A DNA stretch of 64,000 nt from Haliotis cracherodii. Lineage: Eukaryota. Below the pieces are notes generated by a model, which was given only the letters and a program-made list of their open reading frames with translations, was not told the origin of the DNA and made no database searches. The stretch is from contig NW_027266269.1 in the NCBI RefSeq assembly GCF_022045235.1, positions 8,308,001-8,372,000 of the forward strand. Direction: 5' to 3'. Positions 33,741-41,022 of the stretch are shown here, piece by piece. The position numbers and the translations under genes are program-made. How positions within the stretch are numbered: the first letter of the stretch is position 1; each line of letters opens with the position of its first letter.

Positions 33741-33804
33741 TAAACTGATTTCCTCACATCAACCAATGCTGATATCAGTGACATGAAGATTCCCTTGACA
33801 GTTC

Positions 33805-33862
33805 GGCACTCGTGAAGAGCAACCTCCTCGTGGTGAGTGCTGGGTAACGCTAATAGCTCTTC
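33805..33862 (+). ncRNA. Predicted minimal HDV-like (nested double pseudoknot) self-cleaving ribozyme at the LINE 5' end
   Basis: P1 GGCACUC/GAGUGCU with G1-U wobble; P2 GAAGAGC(A)/(U,A)GCUCUUC; P3 ACC/GGU; L3 UCCUCGU; P1.1 CC/GG; J4/2 GCUAA with the catalytic-position C at 33850. G1 is the first base after the TSD. Confidence 0.85.
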
Positions 33863-36800
33863 CCCCGTGTGGACTCGGAGTAGAATTTGTCCACAGCACC
33901 CCATTGCTGGTCGTAAAAGGCAACCGAATTGGGCAACCTGTTTGCCGTAGGTTGAGCCCCTGTGTCGGTGGAGGAAGGGATTCTGGTGGTTGAGGGCACT
34001 GGAACCAGGAACCAGTGTTCCATTTGCCCAACACACCACTTTGACCCTAACTTCACCTAGAAGGTGGTAGAATGGGCCCGATTCTATCAATCGGCTGGTC
34101 ACGCCATGCCCTGTACATGGACTACCTGATTATTTACATGTCTCACATGTTACAATCTTGTTTCAGGATAAAAAGATGACCTTGACTCTATTTATTATAA
34201 TTTTGCCTAGAGTCGATGCCGGAAGGCGGTGGCTCATGGGCCAATCTGGCTATATATCAACCTCTGGGTTCTATTGACTTCAAATTACTGTCAAGGGCCG
34301 AACCAGCCTGACTTTAAATTCTGTTTGTCAATAATAGCTACCTATGTTTATATTGCTTGAGTATAACGCCTTTGTAACCCTGGTGTTGTAGATTGCTTTC
34401 CTATGCATCATCGTCCTTGTTGACACTCGATGGCGGGTGGGGAGCAGAGGTGTCGAATCAAATAATCACACAATGTCTCACTACAAATCTCCTGGTTCTT
34501 TCAAAGCTAACATACTTCGTCATGTCGATTCTGTTTCGTCTGACGATGAGGTATCGCCTATTGTTGCTGATTCTTGGCCACGATTCATTGTTATTGTATC
34601 GGTCGATGAAACTCCTTTAAAACTTAATCCGTTTGCCATATCAAAGGGCATCCAAAGTACTTGTGGTGAAGTGAAGAACATCAATCGTCTTCGTTCTCGT
34701 TCCATTCTTATAGAATGTGCACGGAGACAGCAATCTATCAACTTACTGGGTATCCAGCAGTTTGTGAACACGCAGGTTGCTGTCTCAGAGCACAGGACAT
34801 TAAATTCTAGTCTAGGTATCGTGAGAGATCGAGCACGATGTCTTGCAGAAATGACAGAAGTAGAGATTGCAGCTGAACTTAAACATCAGGGTGTCACTGC
34901 TGTCAAGCGATTCACACGAAAAAAAGAAGATGGAAATATTATTAAAACACAAACCTACCTTTTCACATTCTCAACGTCTACTGTTCCATCATCAATAAAA
35001 GCTGGATACTTCAACATCGGAGTGGAGGTTTATGTTCCAAATCCACTCCGGTGTTTCTACTGTCAACACTTTGGTCGCGGGGCCAAATCTTGCACAGCCA
35101 AGACGAGGTGCTCCCGTTGCAGTGGTCCCCATGAGGGCACAGAATGCTCAAATGAGATCAAATGTGCTAACTGCAGTGGTGAGCACTTGTCATCGTCCAA
35201 ATCATGCCCGATTTTCGATCGCGAATCGAAAATACTTAAAATCAAACATACAAATAACATTACCTACTCTGACGCCAAAAAAAATCCTTTTACCCTCTCA
35301 GACCCCTTCCAATAAATCATATTCAGCTGCAGTCTCTTCTCCGAGTCCAGGAAAAAAATCACCATGACATCCACTCACTGTCAGACTGATATTTCGTGGA
35401 TCACCAATGACCAGATCATCATTGATGAAGCACCTACATTATCTCCAAACAAGCCAACAACAATGACGTCTTCATCTCAAACAGAAAACCTGCAACCTTC
35501 ACATAGTCAACCCACTGAACCAGAACCTATACAGGAATCCGAATCAGTTCAGGGTGAAGCCCATCTGTCAAAAAACCAAAAAACCAAAACGCAAATGAGG
35601 AGAAAGGTCAGAGCACTCCAACACTTGGAGGAGCCTTCTCCTGACCCGTGACCTGTAACGGTTCATAATTTATTTGAACCATTGGGCATGAAGGTCACTC
35701 CTTCCCTCCCAGTACATGGGATGTCCCTCCCAGTACATGGGATGTCCCTCCCACTCGTTCACCTGTCCCCGTTGATCCTCCATGAGTGGAGCTACTAACT
35801 TAATACAATGGAATTGCAGAGGACTTAGGAACAATTTTAATGATCTACAGTTATTATCACAGGATTTTAAACCATCAGCTTTTAGCTTACAAGAAACATA
35901 CCTGAAAAATACAGATAAATTTGATTTTCGTCAGTACAATTCGTATCATTCGTTTTCACCTCCAGGTGAAAAAGCCACTGGTGGCGCTTCCATTTTGGTG
36001 TGGCGGGATGTCATCCATAGCCCCGTCCCTCTTAAATGCAACCTTCAAGCTGTTGCTGTCCGTATGTCTTAACATATTACCTTCACACTTTGCTCTTTAT
36101 ACATTTCACCATCGTCTACTCTTCAGCAGTCTGATCTTCAGGATTTGTTTGATCAGCTCCCAAGGCCCTGTGTCATTATGGGCGACCTAAATGGACCTAA
36201 CCCCCTCTGGGGAAGTAGAGATACCAACAACAAAGGGAAAATCCTGGACGACTTAATTTAAAAAAACAATTTACGCCTATATAATGATGGATCCGACACA
36301 TATTTACATCCCGCTACTGGAACTTATTCTGCTCTTGATTTGTCGCTCACAGATCCAAATATATATAACGAATTTGAATGGTCAGTCCACAACGATCTAT
36401 GTGGAAGCGACCATTTCCCCACAGTACTTTCTGCTATTAAACCGAATGATGAACCGCCTGTGTCAAGGTGGAATTTTAAAAGGGCCAACTGGCCATTATT
36501 TCAGACACTTTGTACTGACAAATTGACATCTGACATTTTTATTAACGTCCCTGATCCTATTCAGTTGTTCACGGCCATACTGAATAATATTGCTGATGTA
36601 ACTATTCCTAAGTCCTCTATTAAACCACACATTCGTAAACCATGGTTTACAGATGATTGCAAACAGGCTAGGAAGGGTAGGAGGAAGGCTGAAAAATGCT
36701 TTCGCCGTCATCCTACAGGTCACAATTTAAATACTGTAAAGATAAATGGTGCCAAGGCTCGACGTACGTTTAAACAAAATCGGCAACAGTCTTGGAGAAA

Positions 36801-39800
36801 TTTTGTATCAAAGATTAATCCCCGTACACAAATGACAAAGGTGTGGAACATGGTACAAAGAATCAAAGGGAAGGGTTCAAATTCTGGCGTTCATCATCAT
36901 AAAGATGATCATAGTCTACTAACTGACAAAGTAGACATCGCAAATTTTTTGGGCGAAACTTTAGCCAAACACTCTTCGTCTTCCAATTATAATCCCAAAT
37001 TTCAGTAATATAAAAATCAACAAGAAAAGAAAACTATTAATTTTAATTCAGATAATGGTGAAGACTACAATGAAATATTTTCACTACATGAGCTCAATAC
37101 TGCCCTAGCGCAAGCCCATGATACCGCAACAGGAGCTGATAATATCCACTATCAGCTCCTTAAACATTTACCCAATCCATGTCTTGAAACACTTTTAAAT
37201 ATGTTTGATAATATTTGGACCACTGGACACTTTCCTCCTTCCTGGCTCAATGCTATTGTTATCCCTATACAAAAACCTGGCCGGGATCATACTGATCCAT
37301 TTCATTATCGACCTGTTTTATTAACTAGCTGTGTATGTAAAACCATGGAACGCATGGTCAATAAACGATTAGTATGGTTTTTAGAAACAATGAATCTTAT
37401 TACCAATATTCAATGTGGTTTCTGCAAAAATCGCAATACTATTGACCATCTGGTTCGTTTAGAATCATTCATTAAAAATTCCATTGTAAATAACCAGCAT
37501 GCTGTATCAATCTTTTTTGATCTTTAAAAAGGTTATGATACAACATGGAAACATGGTATTTTAAAAGATTTGCACGACTTCGGTTCACGAGGCCGTTTGC
37601 CTCATTTTTATATCTCAATTTTTATCGGACAGACAATTTCAAGTTCGTGTTGGATCAACCCTGTCTGATCATTATAATCAGGATCAGGGAGTTCCACAAG
37701 GCAGTATTTTATCTGTCACATTGTTCAGTATAAAAATAAATAGTTTATCAAAAGTATTAAATGACTCAATTGATGAAGTCATTCTTTGTGGATGATTTTA
37801 ATATTTCATGTTGTGGTAAAAATATGCGTACTATTGAACGCCAATTACAGTTGTGTCTTAATAAAATTCATAAATGGTGTCTTGAGAATGGATTTAAGTT
37901 CTCACAGACCAAGACCAATTGTATCCATTTTTGTCGGAAATATAAACCTCATAAAGATCCTGAACTCTTTTTAGATGGCACTCCAATCAAGATTGTAAAA
38001 GAAGCAAAATTTTTAGGGTTAATTTTCGACCATCATCTAACTTTTTTGCCAAATATTAAATATCTAAAGACAAAATGCCTGAAGGCCATAGATTTGTTAA
38101 AAGTCGTCTCAAATTCAAAGTGGGATGGGGATCAGAAAACCCTTCTTCACCTCTATCGATCATTGATCCGTTCTAAATTGTACTATGGCTCCATTGTGTA
38201 TGCTGGAGCTTGCCAGAGTAATTTAAAAAAGCTGGATCCAATCCACCATCAAGGATTAAGACTTTGTCTTGGTGCTTTTCGGACTTCCCCAGTTGACAGC
38301 CTCTATGTTGAGTCTGATGAACACTCCTTCGAACAACGCCATATTAAATTGTCTCTCCAGTATATTACTAAATTACGTTACAATCCCTCAAATCCTGCTT
38401 ATGACTCCGTTTTTAATCCCCTATATGAAGAATTGTTTCAGAAGAAACCAAAGATGGTTCCTCCACTTGGTATTCGGCTCAAATCTCATATTAGTGCTGC
38501 AAATCTTGATTTGGACATCACCTCTCCTTACCGACTTTTGTCTGCTCCTCCCTCGCAGTTGGTGAGGCCAGAAGTGGACATTTCCCTCACGTGTTATCTT
38601 AAATCTGACATAAACCAGCTATTCTATCAACAGGAATATTTACAATTATGAAATAAATATGACACTCGCCATTCAATCTATACTGATGGGTCTAAGGATG
38701 GTGGCAAAGTAGCAAGTGCCACTGTCGTTGGATCAAAAATAATATCCTCCAGAATACCAGACAATAGCTCTATTTTCACTGCTGAGGCCAATGCTATTCT
38801 TACAGCATTGATATCCATTCAACAACAGTCTGCATCATTATCATCTTTTCTGATTTTCTTTCTTGCCTTCAGGCACTAAATAATGTGTCTTCGACTCATC
38901 CACTGATTTTAGATATTATGGAACTGTACAATGATCTTTCCACTGGCCAATTCGACATCGTCTTTTGTTGGTTACCCAGTCATATGGGCATAAAAGGTAA
39001 CACAATGGCTGATGCTGCTGCAAAAGCAGCACTCAACAAATCTGTGACACCACTTCTGATCCCATACAGTGATTACAAACCTGTGATTCGATGTTACATC
39101 CGAGATCTGATGCATAAGAAGTGGGGCACCCAAGCAGGTATCAATAAATTACATCAAATTAAACCAAATATCGGTTACACCTACTTGGGTTGTCAGTCCA
39201 GATTTGAAGAGGTAATTTTACGACGATATCGTATTGGCCATAGTAGATATACTAATGAATATGTATTAAAAGGTGAGGATCCTCCGTTTTGTATCCCTTG
39301 TGATGAGAGAATCACAGTCAAGCATGTCCTGCTTGACTGTATTGATTTTTCCATCACAAGGGATAAATATTTTAATGTCAAAACAGTGAAGGACCTTTTT
39401 AGAAATGTTAATTCACATTTAATCATTAACTTTTCTAAAAAGATATAGAGCTAATTCACAAATTTGGATGTAAAAAGTTATGTATTTTATAAATCGGTAG
39501 TGTATACTTAGTAACTGAGACTGTTCGTGGCTATACCCCTGACGGGGGTTGAAGTAGCGTAAAATTATTGTCCCCCTGAGAGGGTATGTAAGCCAACCTC
39601 TTTCAAAGAATATTTATATCTACCTCTATTTTAACTGCAGAATATTTGTTAACTTTTAATATCTGGCTAAACTCGCCATAATCACCAGTAACTTGGGGAA
39701 GTGCAAATCCTGCTGTGGAACCATGCAATTGGCAGAGGTACCGTAAGTCCCCTTGGTCCCCAGTATGGTGATCTTAACCTTGTTGCTGGCGATCTATAGC

Positions 39801-40002
39801 CCCATTTTTATATTGTGTCGTACCTTAATAATCAGATGTTTTTAGTGTTCTACAACTAGTTTTAACTTAATACGTGATATATTGCTAGTTATTATACTGT
39901 CCCTCGTCGACAGTTTTAATGACTATTGTATAACTTGTTCAAGTCACATTATGGCTGAAATATTGCCGGCGTGACTTTAATTAAACTCTCTCACTAACTC
40001 AC
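33805..40002 (+). mobile_element. Full-length I-group (Nimb/I-like) non-LTR retrotransposon, inactivated
   Basis: 14-bp TSD tcccttgacagttc at 33791-33804 and 40003-40016; empty site in unit 2 (~60820). ORF1 (34437-~35650) has 3 CCHC knuckles. ORF2 (35782-39448) has APE (WNCRG, LQET, GDLN, SDH), RT (GVPQGSILS, FVDD), RNase H (YTDGSK, WLPSH.GIKGN..AD) and C-terminal CxxC..H..C, with several stops and frameshifts; (ACTC)n-like tail. Confidence 0.95.
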
Positions 40003-41022
40003 TCCCTTGACAGTTCTTCAAAACTCCTTGTCACCTCACCAGTCTCAGCCGATATCAGTGATATGAAGATTCCCTTGACAGTGCTTCAAGACTCAAGCAG
40101 TTTAATCAGAACTCAACTTGTTCAGAAAACAGATCTATCTTAGACTTAGTTACTGATGAACAACTAGAGTTTTTAAGACAAAACGTTAACTGAATATGGT
40201 TCACGCAAGAACCCGCAAGTGGAACATAATAACATAACGAACATAAACTTCGTCTAGACTAAGGACGAGTCATGACAGATGAGGCCTTCTCCACACTAAG
40301 CAAATGAAAGTGGACGGCGATCTTGTCGTAAAAATATTTGAATTCTCAACAAACCAAAAGTATCGACAGTCATGAACATCAACACACCCGAAATTTTCTG
40401 TATAGTAAATGAGAATCACGAACATGATAAAACAATTTTGAGCTAGAATGAAATTTTAATTGGGAAATGGTTGCCCAAACACCGGTACTGTTACAACACA
40501 ACACTGACTATAAGTATAGCACTGCTAAACTGGAACAATGTCTGTCTGTCTGTCTGTCTGCCTATTTCTGGTGTCTCCCGCCGTGTTATTGCTGGAATAT
40601 TGCTAAAAGCGGCGTAAAACCATACTCACTCACTGAAGCTATATGGCGGTGACAGGAAGGCTTCAGTGTTTGGGAGTCTTCACATTTTCCGAAAAGTTCT
40701 TGGTGTGTATGGCAAGGAAGCACATCCCGGGATTAGTCCAATTCGCTGTCTGGTTTGATTGTTTATTTGTTATTTACCACTGCACCCAGCAATTTTCCAG
40801 CTATCTGACGGCGATCTGTACATAATGACATCTGGACAAGACAATCCAGTGATTGCCATCATGTGCATCTATCCACGAAACTGGGATACAATGACATGCA
40901 TTAACCAGGTAAGCGAGCAGTTATGCTTCTCACGGTTATTAGACCTTTTCTAAACCGGATCTTCATGGGTCGATAATACATCTAAGGGCTCATAAGGAAA
41001 CTATAGCTACTTGACTTCTCAC

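Follow-up and report, generated by a model that had tools for sequence, protein, structure and literature searches.

5'-end processing by HDV-like ribozymes is known for the elements R2, L1Tc, RTE and Baggins (PMC6765202, PMC3185411, PMC3774820). In Trypanosoma cruzi, the first 77 nt of L1Tc, an APE/RT/RNase H LINE of the ingi clade with dispersed insertion, form the ribozyme L1TcRz (PMC3185411, PMC3383444, PMC4035085). L1TcRz frees the RNA of the element from read-through transcripts, its cleavage site being the first base of the element. The R2 ribozymes are likewise HDV-like double pseudoknots, located at the 5' end of a non-LTR element where they process a co-transcript (PMC3774820, PMC6765202). 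RTE and Baggins, the latter of the LOA clade, are described as LINEs without a promoter, which are transcribed by read-through and cleave themselves at the 5' end (Ruminski et al. 2011, as cited in PMC6765202).

Minimal forms that lack the P4 stem have been described in metagenomes and gut phages, and are reported to be active in vitro (PMC10879173; PMC6326823, citing Riccitelli 2014). Among them, the minimal drz ribozymes (drz-Mtgn-1) and the theta ribozymes of gut phages measure ~50-60 nt and have the same core (PMC10879173). They are nearly confined to Caudoviricetes, where tRNA 3' ends are a frequent location (PMC10879173). The eukaryotic genomes covered by the P4-less phage survey were those of human, mouse and protists only (PMC10879173).

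Here, we describe a predicted P4-less HDV-like ribozyme at the 5' end of a LINE from Haliotis cracherodii, found in a stretch of 64,000 nt that was analysed as a whole (the window). As in L1TcRz, the predicted cleavage site coincides with the first base of the element. L1TcRz is longer, doubles as the Pr77 promoter and has an activity shown experimentally, whereas the present ribozyme belongs to an animal LINE, has 58 nt and no P4, and is known from its sequence. R2 differs more, being specific for a site in 28S rDNA, with a restriction-like endonuclease, a single ORF and a ribozyme that reaches ~184 nt and includes large peripheral domains. RTE and Baggins belong to other clades and, in the account cited above, carry conventional P4-bearing ribozymes. 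With theta ribozymes, the present one has only the P4-less architecture in common: it resides in a eukaryotic LINE, has no tRNA context and is thus not a theta ribozyme. Our literature search found no report that connects Nimb elements or molluscs with HDV-like ribozymes. The mechanism is known; the P4-less form, which we did not find reported for animal LINEs, is unusual there.

The predicted ribozyme and the LINE that carries it

The initial annotation had assigned an HDV/CPEB3-like fold element by element (P1, P2, P3, L3, P1.1 and J4/2), with P4 essentially absent and GUAAC in its place, and had put C33850 at the position equivalent to C75. Each of these assignments is recovered here (Table 1). 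All helices are fully paired and compose the nested double pseudoknot. P1 terminates in a wobble pair between G33805 and U33841, G33805 being the G1 expected at the cleavage site of HDV-like ribozymes. J4/2 displays the C-N-R-A motif, C33850 lying within GCUAA. The alignments to RF00094 and RF02682 both place C33850 in the catalytic column. This cytosine (C46 in ribozyme numbering) is invariant across 33 copies in the genome. In genomic HDV (RF00094), the helices come in the same order, and the numbering is almost identical (G1, U37, G38/G39, CC in L3). L3 reads UCCUCGU here versus UCCUCGCU in genomic HDV, while GCUAA occurs in J4/2 of both; L3 and J4/2 also resemble the sequences of drz-Agam. 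Genomic HDV differs by the presence of P4 and by its biological context. With the GUAAC linker of the present ribozyme, the positions bordering P4 in HDV are separated by a single nucleotide. This is tighter than in L095, a P4-less relative discussed below.

Table 1. Coordinates of the predicted ribozyme, of the LINE and of related loci. Positions without a prefix refer to the window.
Feature	Position	Strand	Description	Basis
5' target-site duplication	33791-33804	+	14 bp, TCCCTTGACAGTTC	exact repeat at 40003-40016
P4-less HDV-like ribozyme (predicted)	33805-33862	+	GGCACUC-GU-GAAGAGC-A-ACC-UCCUCGU-GGU-GAGUGCU-GG-GUAAC-GCUAAUA-GCUCUUC; predicted cleavage 5' of G33805	sequence, Rfam alignments, descriptor
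P1	33805-33811 / 33835-33841	+	GGCACUC / GAGUGCU, 7 bp, G1-U37 wobble	
P2	33814-33820 / 33856-33862	+	GAAGAGC / GCUCUUC, 7 bp, crosses P1	
P3	33822-33824 / 33832-33834	+	ACC / GGU, 3 bp, closes 7-nt L3	
L3	33825-33831	+	UCCUCGU, 7 nt	
P1.1	C33826, C33827 / G33843, G33842	+	2 bp, CC of L3 with GG after P1	
Linker replacing P4	33844-33848	+	GUAAC, 5 nt	
J4/2	33849-33855	+	GCUAAUA, contains C33850	
Predicted catalytic cytosine	33850	+	C75 equivalent, in J4/2	GCuAA column of RF00094 and RF02682
Conserved, apparently structured 5'-UTR RNA	33894-34112	+		cross-species identity, RNAalifold
ORF1 remnant (gag-like)	34413-35705	+	47% identical to 474-aa ORF1 of uninterrupted paralogue	tblastn
ORF2 remnant (APE, RT, RNase H)	35782-39445	+	pieces in frames 1, 2, 3, 2	tblastn
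Degenerate 3' tail	39985-40002	+	…CTCTCACTAACTCAC; corresponds to (ACTC)n tail of other copies	
3' copy of target-site duplication	40003-40016	+	TCCCTTGACAGTTC	exact repeat of 33791-33804
Relative ribozyme without P4	L095:1-64		contig starts at G1	
Relative ribozymes with P4 stem	L116:2308, L093:1070, L103:426, L152:3817, L082:149			
Relative ribozymes with P4	L101:1, L102:1		contigs start inside P1	
UTR homologues	L078:1-215, L045:5-213, L047:3979-4207, L059:1-190			compared with window 33894-34112

In a scan of 201 nt around the site, two HDV models align end to end from base 33805: RF02682 with 29 bits (E 7e-4, gathering threshold 44) and RF00094 with 24.8 bits (gathering threshold 50). RF01787 matches the P3/L3 core with 15.2 bits, versus a gathering threshold of 37. 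In the whole window, Rfam gives no match at gathering thresholds, those of these three models included. The low scores are largely due to the missing P4, the models having an insert of 15-30 nt where a single nucleotide is present here. HDV covariance models thus recognise the site from its first base but do not bring it to the gathering score.

We also used a strict descriptor. It demands a G1 and helices P1 of 7 bp, P3 of 3 bp and P2 of 6 bp or more; P1.1 has to be Watson-Crick, and CNRA has to precede the 3' strand of P2. Over both strands of the window (128 kb of strand), this descriptor matches once, at 33805. Locally shuffled windows contain 0.15 matches each, and the chance of a match exactly at the first base of the element is roughly 1e-6 (0.15 per 128,000 positions). 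The nested minimum-free-energy fold of the site is not unusual (z = -1.38), a result that is uninformative because the program cannot model pseudoknots.

The exact copies of TCCCTTGACAGTTC on both sides delimit the element to 33805-40002, that is 6,198 bp; 0.03 repeats of this kind are expected by chance. As had been proposed, G1 lies exactly at the insertion junction, the target-site duplication (TSD) ending directly before G33805. The LINE is inserted into one unit of a ~68-bp host tandem duplication (33768-33804 plus 40017-40044, compared with 40045-40110). A third copy of the TSD sequence, with one mismatch, is found at 40071-40084.

The description of the element as a full-length LINE holds for its extent but not for its coding regions, which are split by frameshifts and stops; in ORF2 of the window copy, RVT_1 and RNase_H are matched only as fragments. 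The closest relatives of this copy within the genome share 93% of its ORF2 DNA sequence. Together with the broken ORFs, this indicates that the window copy is old and coding-dead. Despite this, its ribozyme sequence is the commonest form in the genome. In uninterrupted copies, ORF1 measures 421-474 aa and weakly matches a zf-CCHC knuckle, and ORF2 measures ~1,230 aa; in the latter, Pfam finds Exo_endo_phos, RVT_1 and RNase_H in this order. A C-terminal Cys/His motif of ORF2 (C1174, C1177, H1185 and C1190) is invariant in the ORF2 alignment. The 3' tails of the family are made of 2-5 ACTC units rather than poly(A), and the TSDs have 12-14 bp. The ORF1 of the paralogue and the ordered domains of ORF2 fit the proposed gag-ORF1/APE/RT/RNase H organisation of the I group. 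Judged by its domain content, the element is consistent with an RNase H-bearing LINE of I-group type.

Copies in the genome and conservation of the 5' region

In the genome (1.18 Gb, 80 contigs), ~1,746 candidate sites were found for the first 120 nt of the element. A covariance model built from genome copies (R1) retrieves at least 150 full-length copies of the 60-mer at 95.9-96.6 bits, most of them at the top score of the window copy. Copies of the 5' end are strongly concentrated in a small number of megabase-scale regions, at 20.8-21.6 Mb of contig C2, 35.3-35.9 Mb of C23, 30.4-30.9 Mb of C3 and 4.2-5.6 Mb of C6 (genome G000).

The expectation that full-length copies start at G1 is verified at most junctions. 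Homology begins at GGCAC beside unrelated flanks in 27 of 29 loci. A TSD of 12-14 bp adjoins G1 without extra bases in 10 of 12 other full-length copies, the remaining two being nested insertions. The first base of the ribozyme is therefore also the first base of the element, as is the case for ribozymes at LINE 5' ends.

Conservation was compared as mean per-column pairwise identity in 33 copies from lineages with different ORF lengths. It falls from 0.984 in nt 1-58 to 0.92 in nt 59-300 and to 0.43-0.67 in the ORF1 region. Copies picked solely for their common 5' end have ~75% ORF2 DNA identity and 47% ORF1 protein identity to the window copy. Variable sites of the ribozyme are position 24 in L3 and positions 40 and 43 in the linker replacing P4, as well as position 3 of P1 in one copy. 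The covariation anticipated among copies is absent within the genome, since the helices almost never vary; it is across species that the three helices differ in sequence and yet pair. The near invariance of the helices may reflect strong constraint or repeated exchange of 5' ends between lineages, rather than covariation.

Downstream of the ribozyme, a UTR region of ~220 nt is 70-80% identical across species in which the ORF2 proteins are only ~45-55% identical. RNAalifold predicts 52 pairs in this region, 17 of which have double compensatory changes. The region is a candidate IRES, promoter or protein-binding RNA.

Relatives in other DNA

Many metagenomic and other contigs carry ORF2 homologues with 50-64% identity; such homologues are also found in contigs filed under clam or worm symbionts and in JGI metagenomes. 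Relatives of the LINE were also sought among viral contigs, and none was found there. Bacterial or archaeal MAG and symbiont contigs (L043-L075; Thiodiazotropha, Solemya symbionts, Chloroflexota, Sulfurovum and others) carry the eukaryotic LINE. In these contigs, the LINE is likely to be host-animal DNA binned into the assemblies.

Ribozymes were searched for in relatives whose contigs have enough upstream sequence. In relatives with a 42-52% identical ORF2, the coding strand bears HDV-like ribozymes at a distance of 1.6-2.2 kb upstream from ORF2. The flank of the L116 ribozyme is an antisense LINE ORF2 that the insertion disrupted, and the homology of this flank to intact copies ends exactly at G1 of the ribozyme. 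The 5' end of the element coincides with the first base of P1 in three families whose P1 sequences differ. Just 5' of the L152 ribozyme, a near-perfect hairpin of 83 nt (L152:3717-3799) scores 41.5 bits with mir-609 (gathering threshold 98); the flanking DNA probably contains an inverted repeat here.

Helices of the window ribozyme and of six relatives (L095, L116, L093, L103, L152 and L082; L101 and L102 were left out) were tabulated by script. The seven sequences, of which the examples were chosen with a descriptor for pairing, show seven P1, five P2 and four P3 sequences, all paired. When strands are swapped between sequences, 57-71% of positions pair. L3 as UCCNNGN, P1.1 as CC/GG and J4/2 as C-N-R-A are fixed across the tabulated ribozymes. 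The 100% pairing across species is partly obtained by construction, since the descriptor used for selection requires pairing. The weight of the cross-species evidence lies in the position of the ribozymes and in the hallmarks that the descriptor does not demand.

On 1.04 Mb of related loci, the strict descriptor gives four matches: two are ribozymes at element 5' ends and two lie within ORF2. No match is found on the minus strand of these loci. Looser descriptors give tens of matches on both strands; these were accepted only at the expected place and with HDV hallmarks. An Rfam scan of eight related loci (53 kb) detects no HDV family at E ≤1, the models being narrow. Model R1 is too sequence-specific, and matches nothing real in the related loci.

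Six relatives (L047, L044, L096, L087, L098 and L107) have the conserved UTR and no recognisable ribozyme upstream of it; L084 and L085 have no homologue of the ribozyme of their sisters. Copies of relatives without a ribozyme may be truncated or rearranged. The metagenomic contigs L045, L059, L078 and L088 begin 86-90 nt into the element, immediately after a short GTGGAC...GTCCAC hairpin, and are therefore devoid of the ribozyme. Their starts probably correspond to an assembly break at the edge of a repeat.

In an ORF2 tree that was made quickly and left unfinished, the window family and the P4-bearing L082 share a group that has support, and the P4-less L095 is found elsewhere. This tree suggests that P4 may have been lost independently at least twice.

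Interpretation and biological significance

The predictions that could be computed came out as expected, in overall support of the HDV-like ribozyme reading. Judging by sequence, region 33805-33862 is probably a working 5'-processing ribozyme of the LINE. The LINE copy would be transcribed from an upstream host or neighbouring promoter, and the nascent RNA would fold into the nested double pseudoknot. With C33850 acting as general acid, the chain would be cut 5' of G33805, leaving an element RNA that has G1 as its first base and a 5'-OH on it. Copied to its end by target-primed reverse transcription, this RNA would then yield new copies that start at G1 directly after the TSD. In this scheme, we infer catalysis and co-transcription with upstream sequence, as well as any further role in uncapped translation or protein binding.

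Several other explanations of the conserved 5' end were considered. The 58-nt form could be the relic of an ancestral P4-bearing ribozyme that no longer cleaves efficiently, with 5' ends set by an internal promoter at G1 within the conserved first ~300 nt. Such a promoter would fit the conservation of the whole first 300 nt (at least 0.92), well beyond the ribozyme, and L1Tc offers a precedent, the same 77 nt being both promoter and ribozyme (PMC3383444); the P4 replacement is also extremely short. We nevertheless find this explanation improbable, as conservation is higher in nt 1-58 (0.984) than in nt 59-300 (0.92) and as, position 3 in one copy excepted, the variable sites are free of constraint from the fold. 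Moreover, the element 5' end stays at the first base of P1 in the three families that differ in P1, and P4-less forms are reported as active elsewhere (PMC6326823 for work it cites, PMC10879173).

Sub-threshold Rfam scores and the lack of covariation within the genome would also be expected if the terminus were mainly a protein-binding or promoter module that matches the HDV fold incidentally. The chance that a descriptor match falls by accident on precisely the first base is ~1e-6, and relatives show the same architecture at the same location with different helices, which leaves this possibility more doubtful still. A chance resemblance in a single decayed repeat copy might be invoked because the window copy is coding-dead. 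It is so unlikely, given the rarity of descriptor matches, the copy number (at least 150 full-length copies with R1, ~1,746 candidate sites) and the junctions and TSDs of many copies, that we reject it.

Beyond the reading as a 5'-processing ribozyme, a broader proposal can be made, to which we give limited credence. P4-less ribozymes could belong natively to the 5' end of a large clade of LINEs of marine invertebrates, as a module under strong selection, with P4 lost independently at least twice. The 58-mer would then do more than cut and, with the UTR, might act as a promoter, initiate translation or offer a platform for protein binding. The near invariance of the 58-mer, while ORF2 DNA differs by ~25%, suggests a role beyond cutting. 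By analogy with Pr77/L1TcRz of trypanosomes, the 58-mer and the UTR may have a dual role.

Since the mechanism is known, the practical novelty is modest. So far, reports of natural P4-less forms come almost entirely from gut phages and metagenomes. If the 58-nt form cleaves, the minimal architecture extends to an active, high-copy animal retrotransposon, and the precise 5' end of promoter-poor elements is explained. The P4-bearing and P4-less relatives would then provide a natural series to study the contribution of P4. If the proposal of a native module is true, animal DNA is a possible source of the minimal delta-like ribozymes seen in metagenomes. Finally, many coding-dead copies would keep a potentially active cutter, which could cleave host read-through transcripts.
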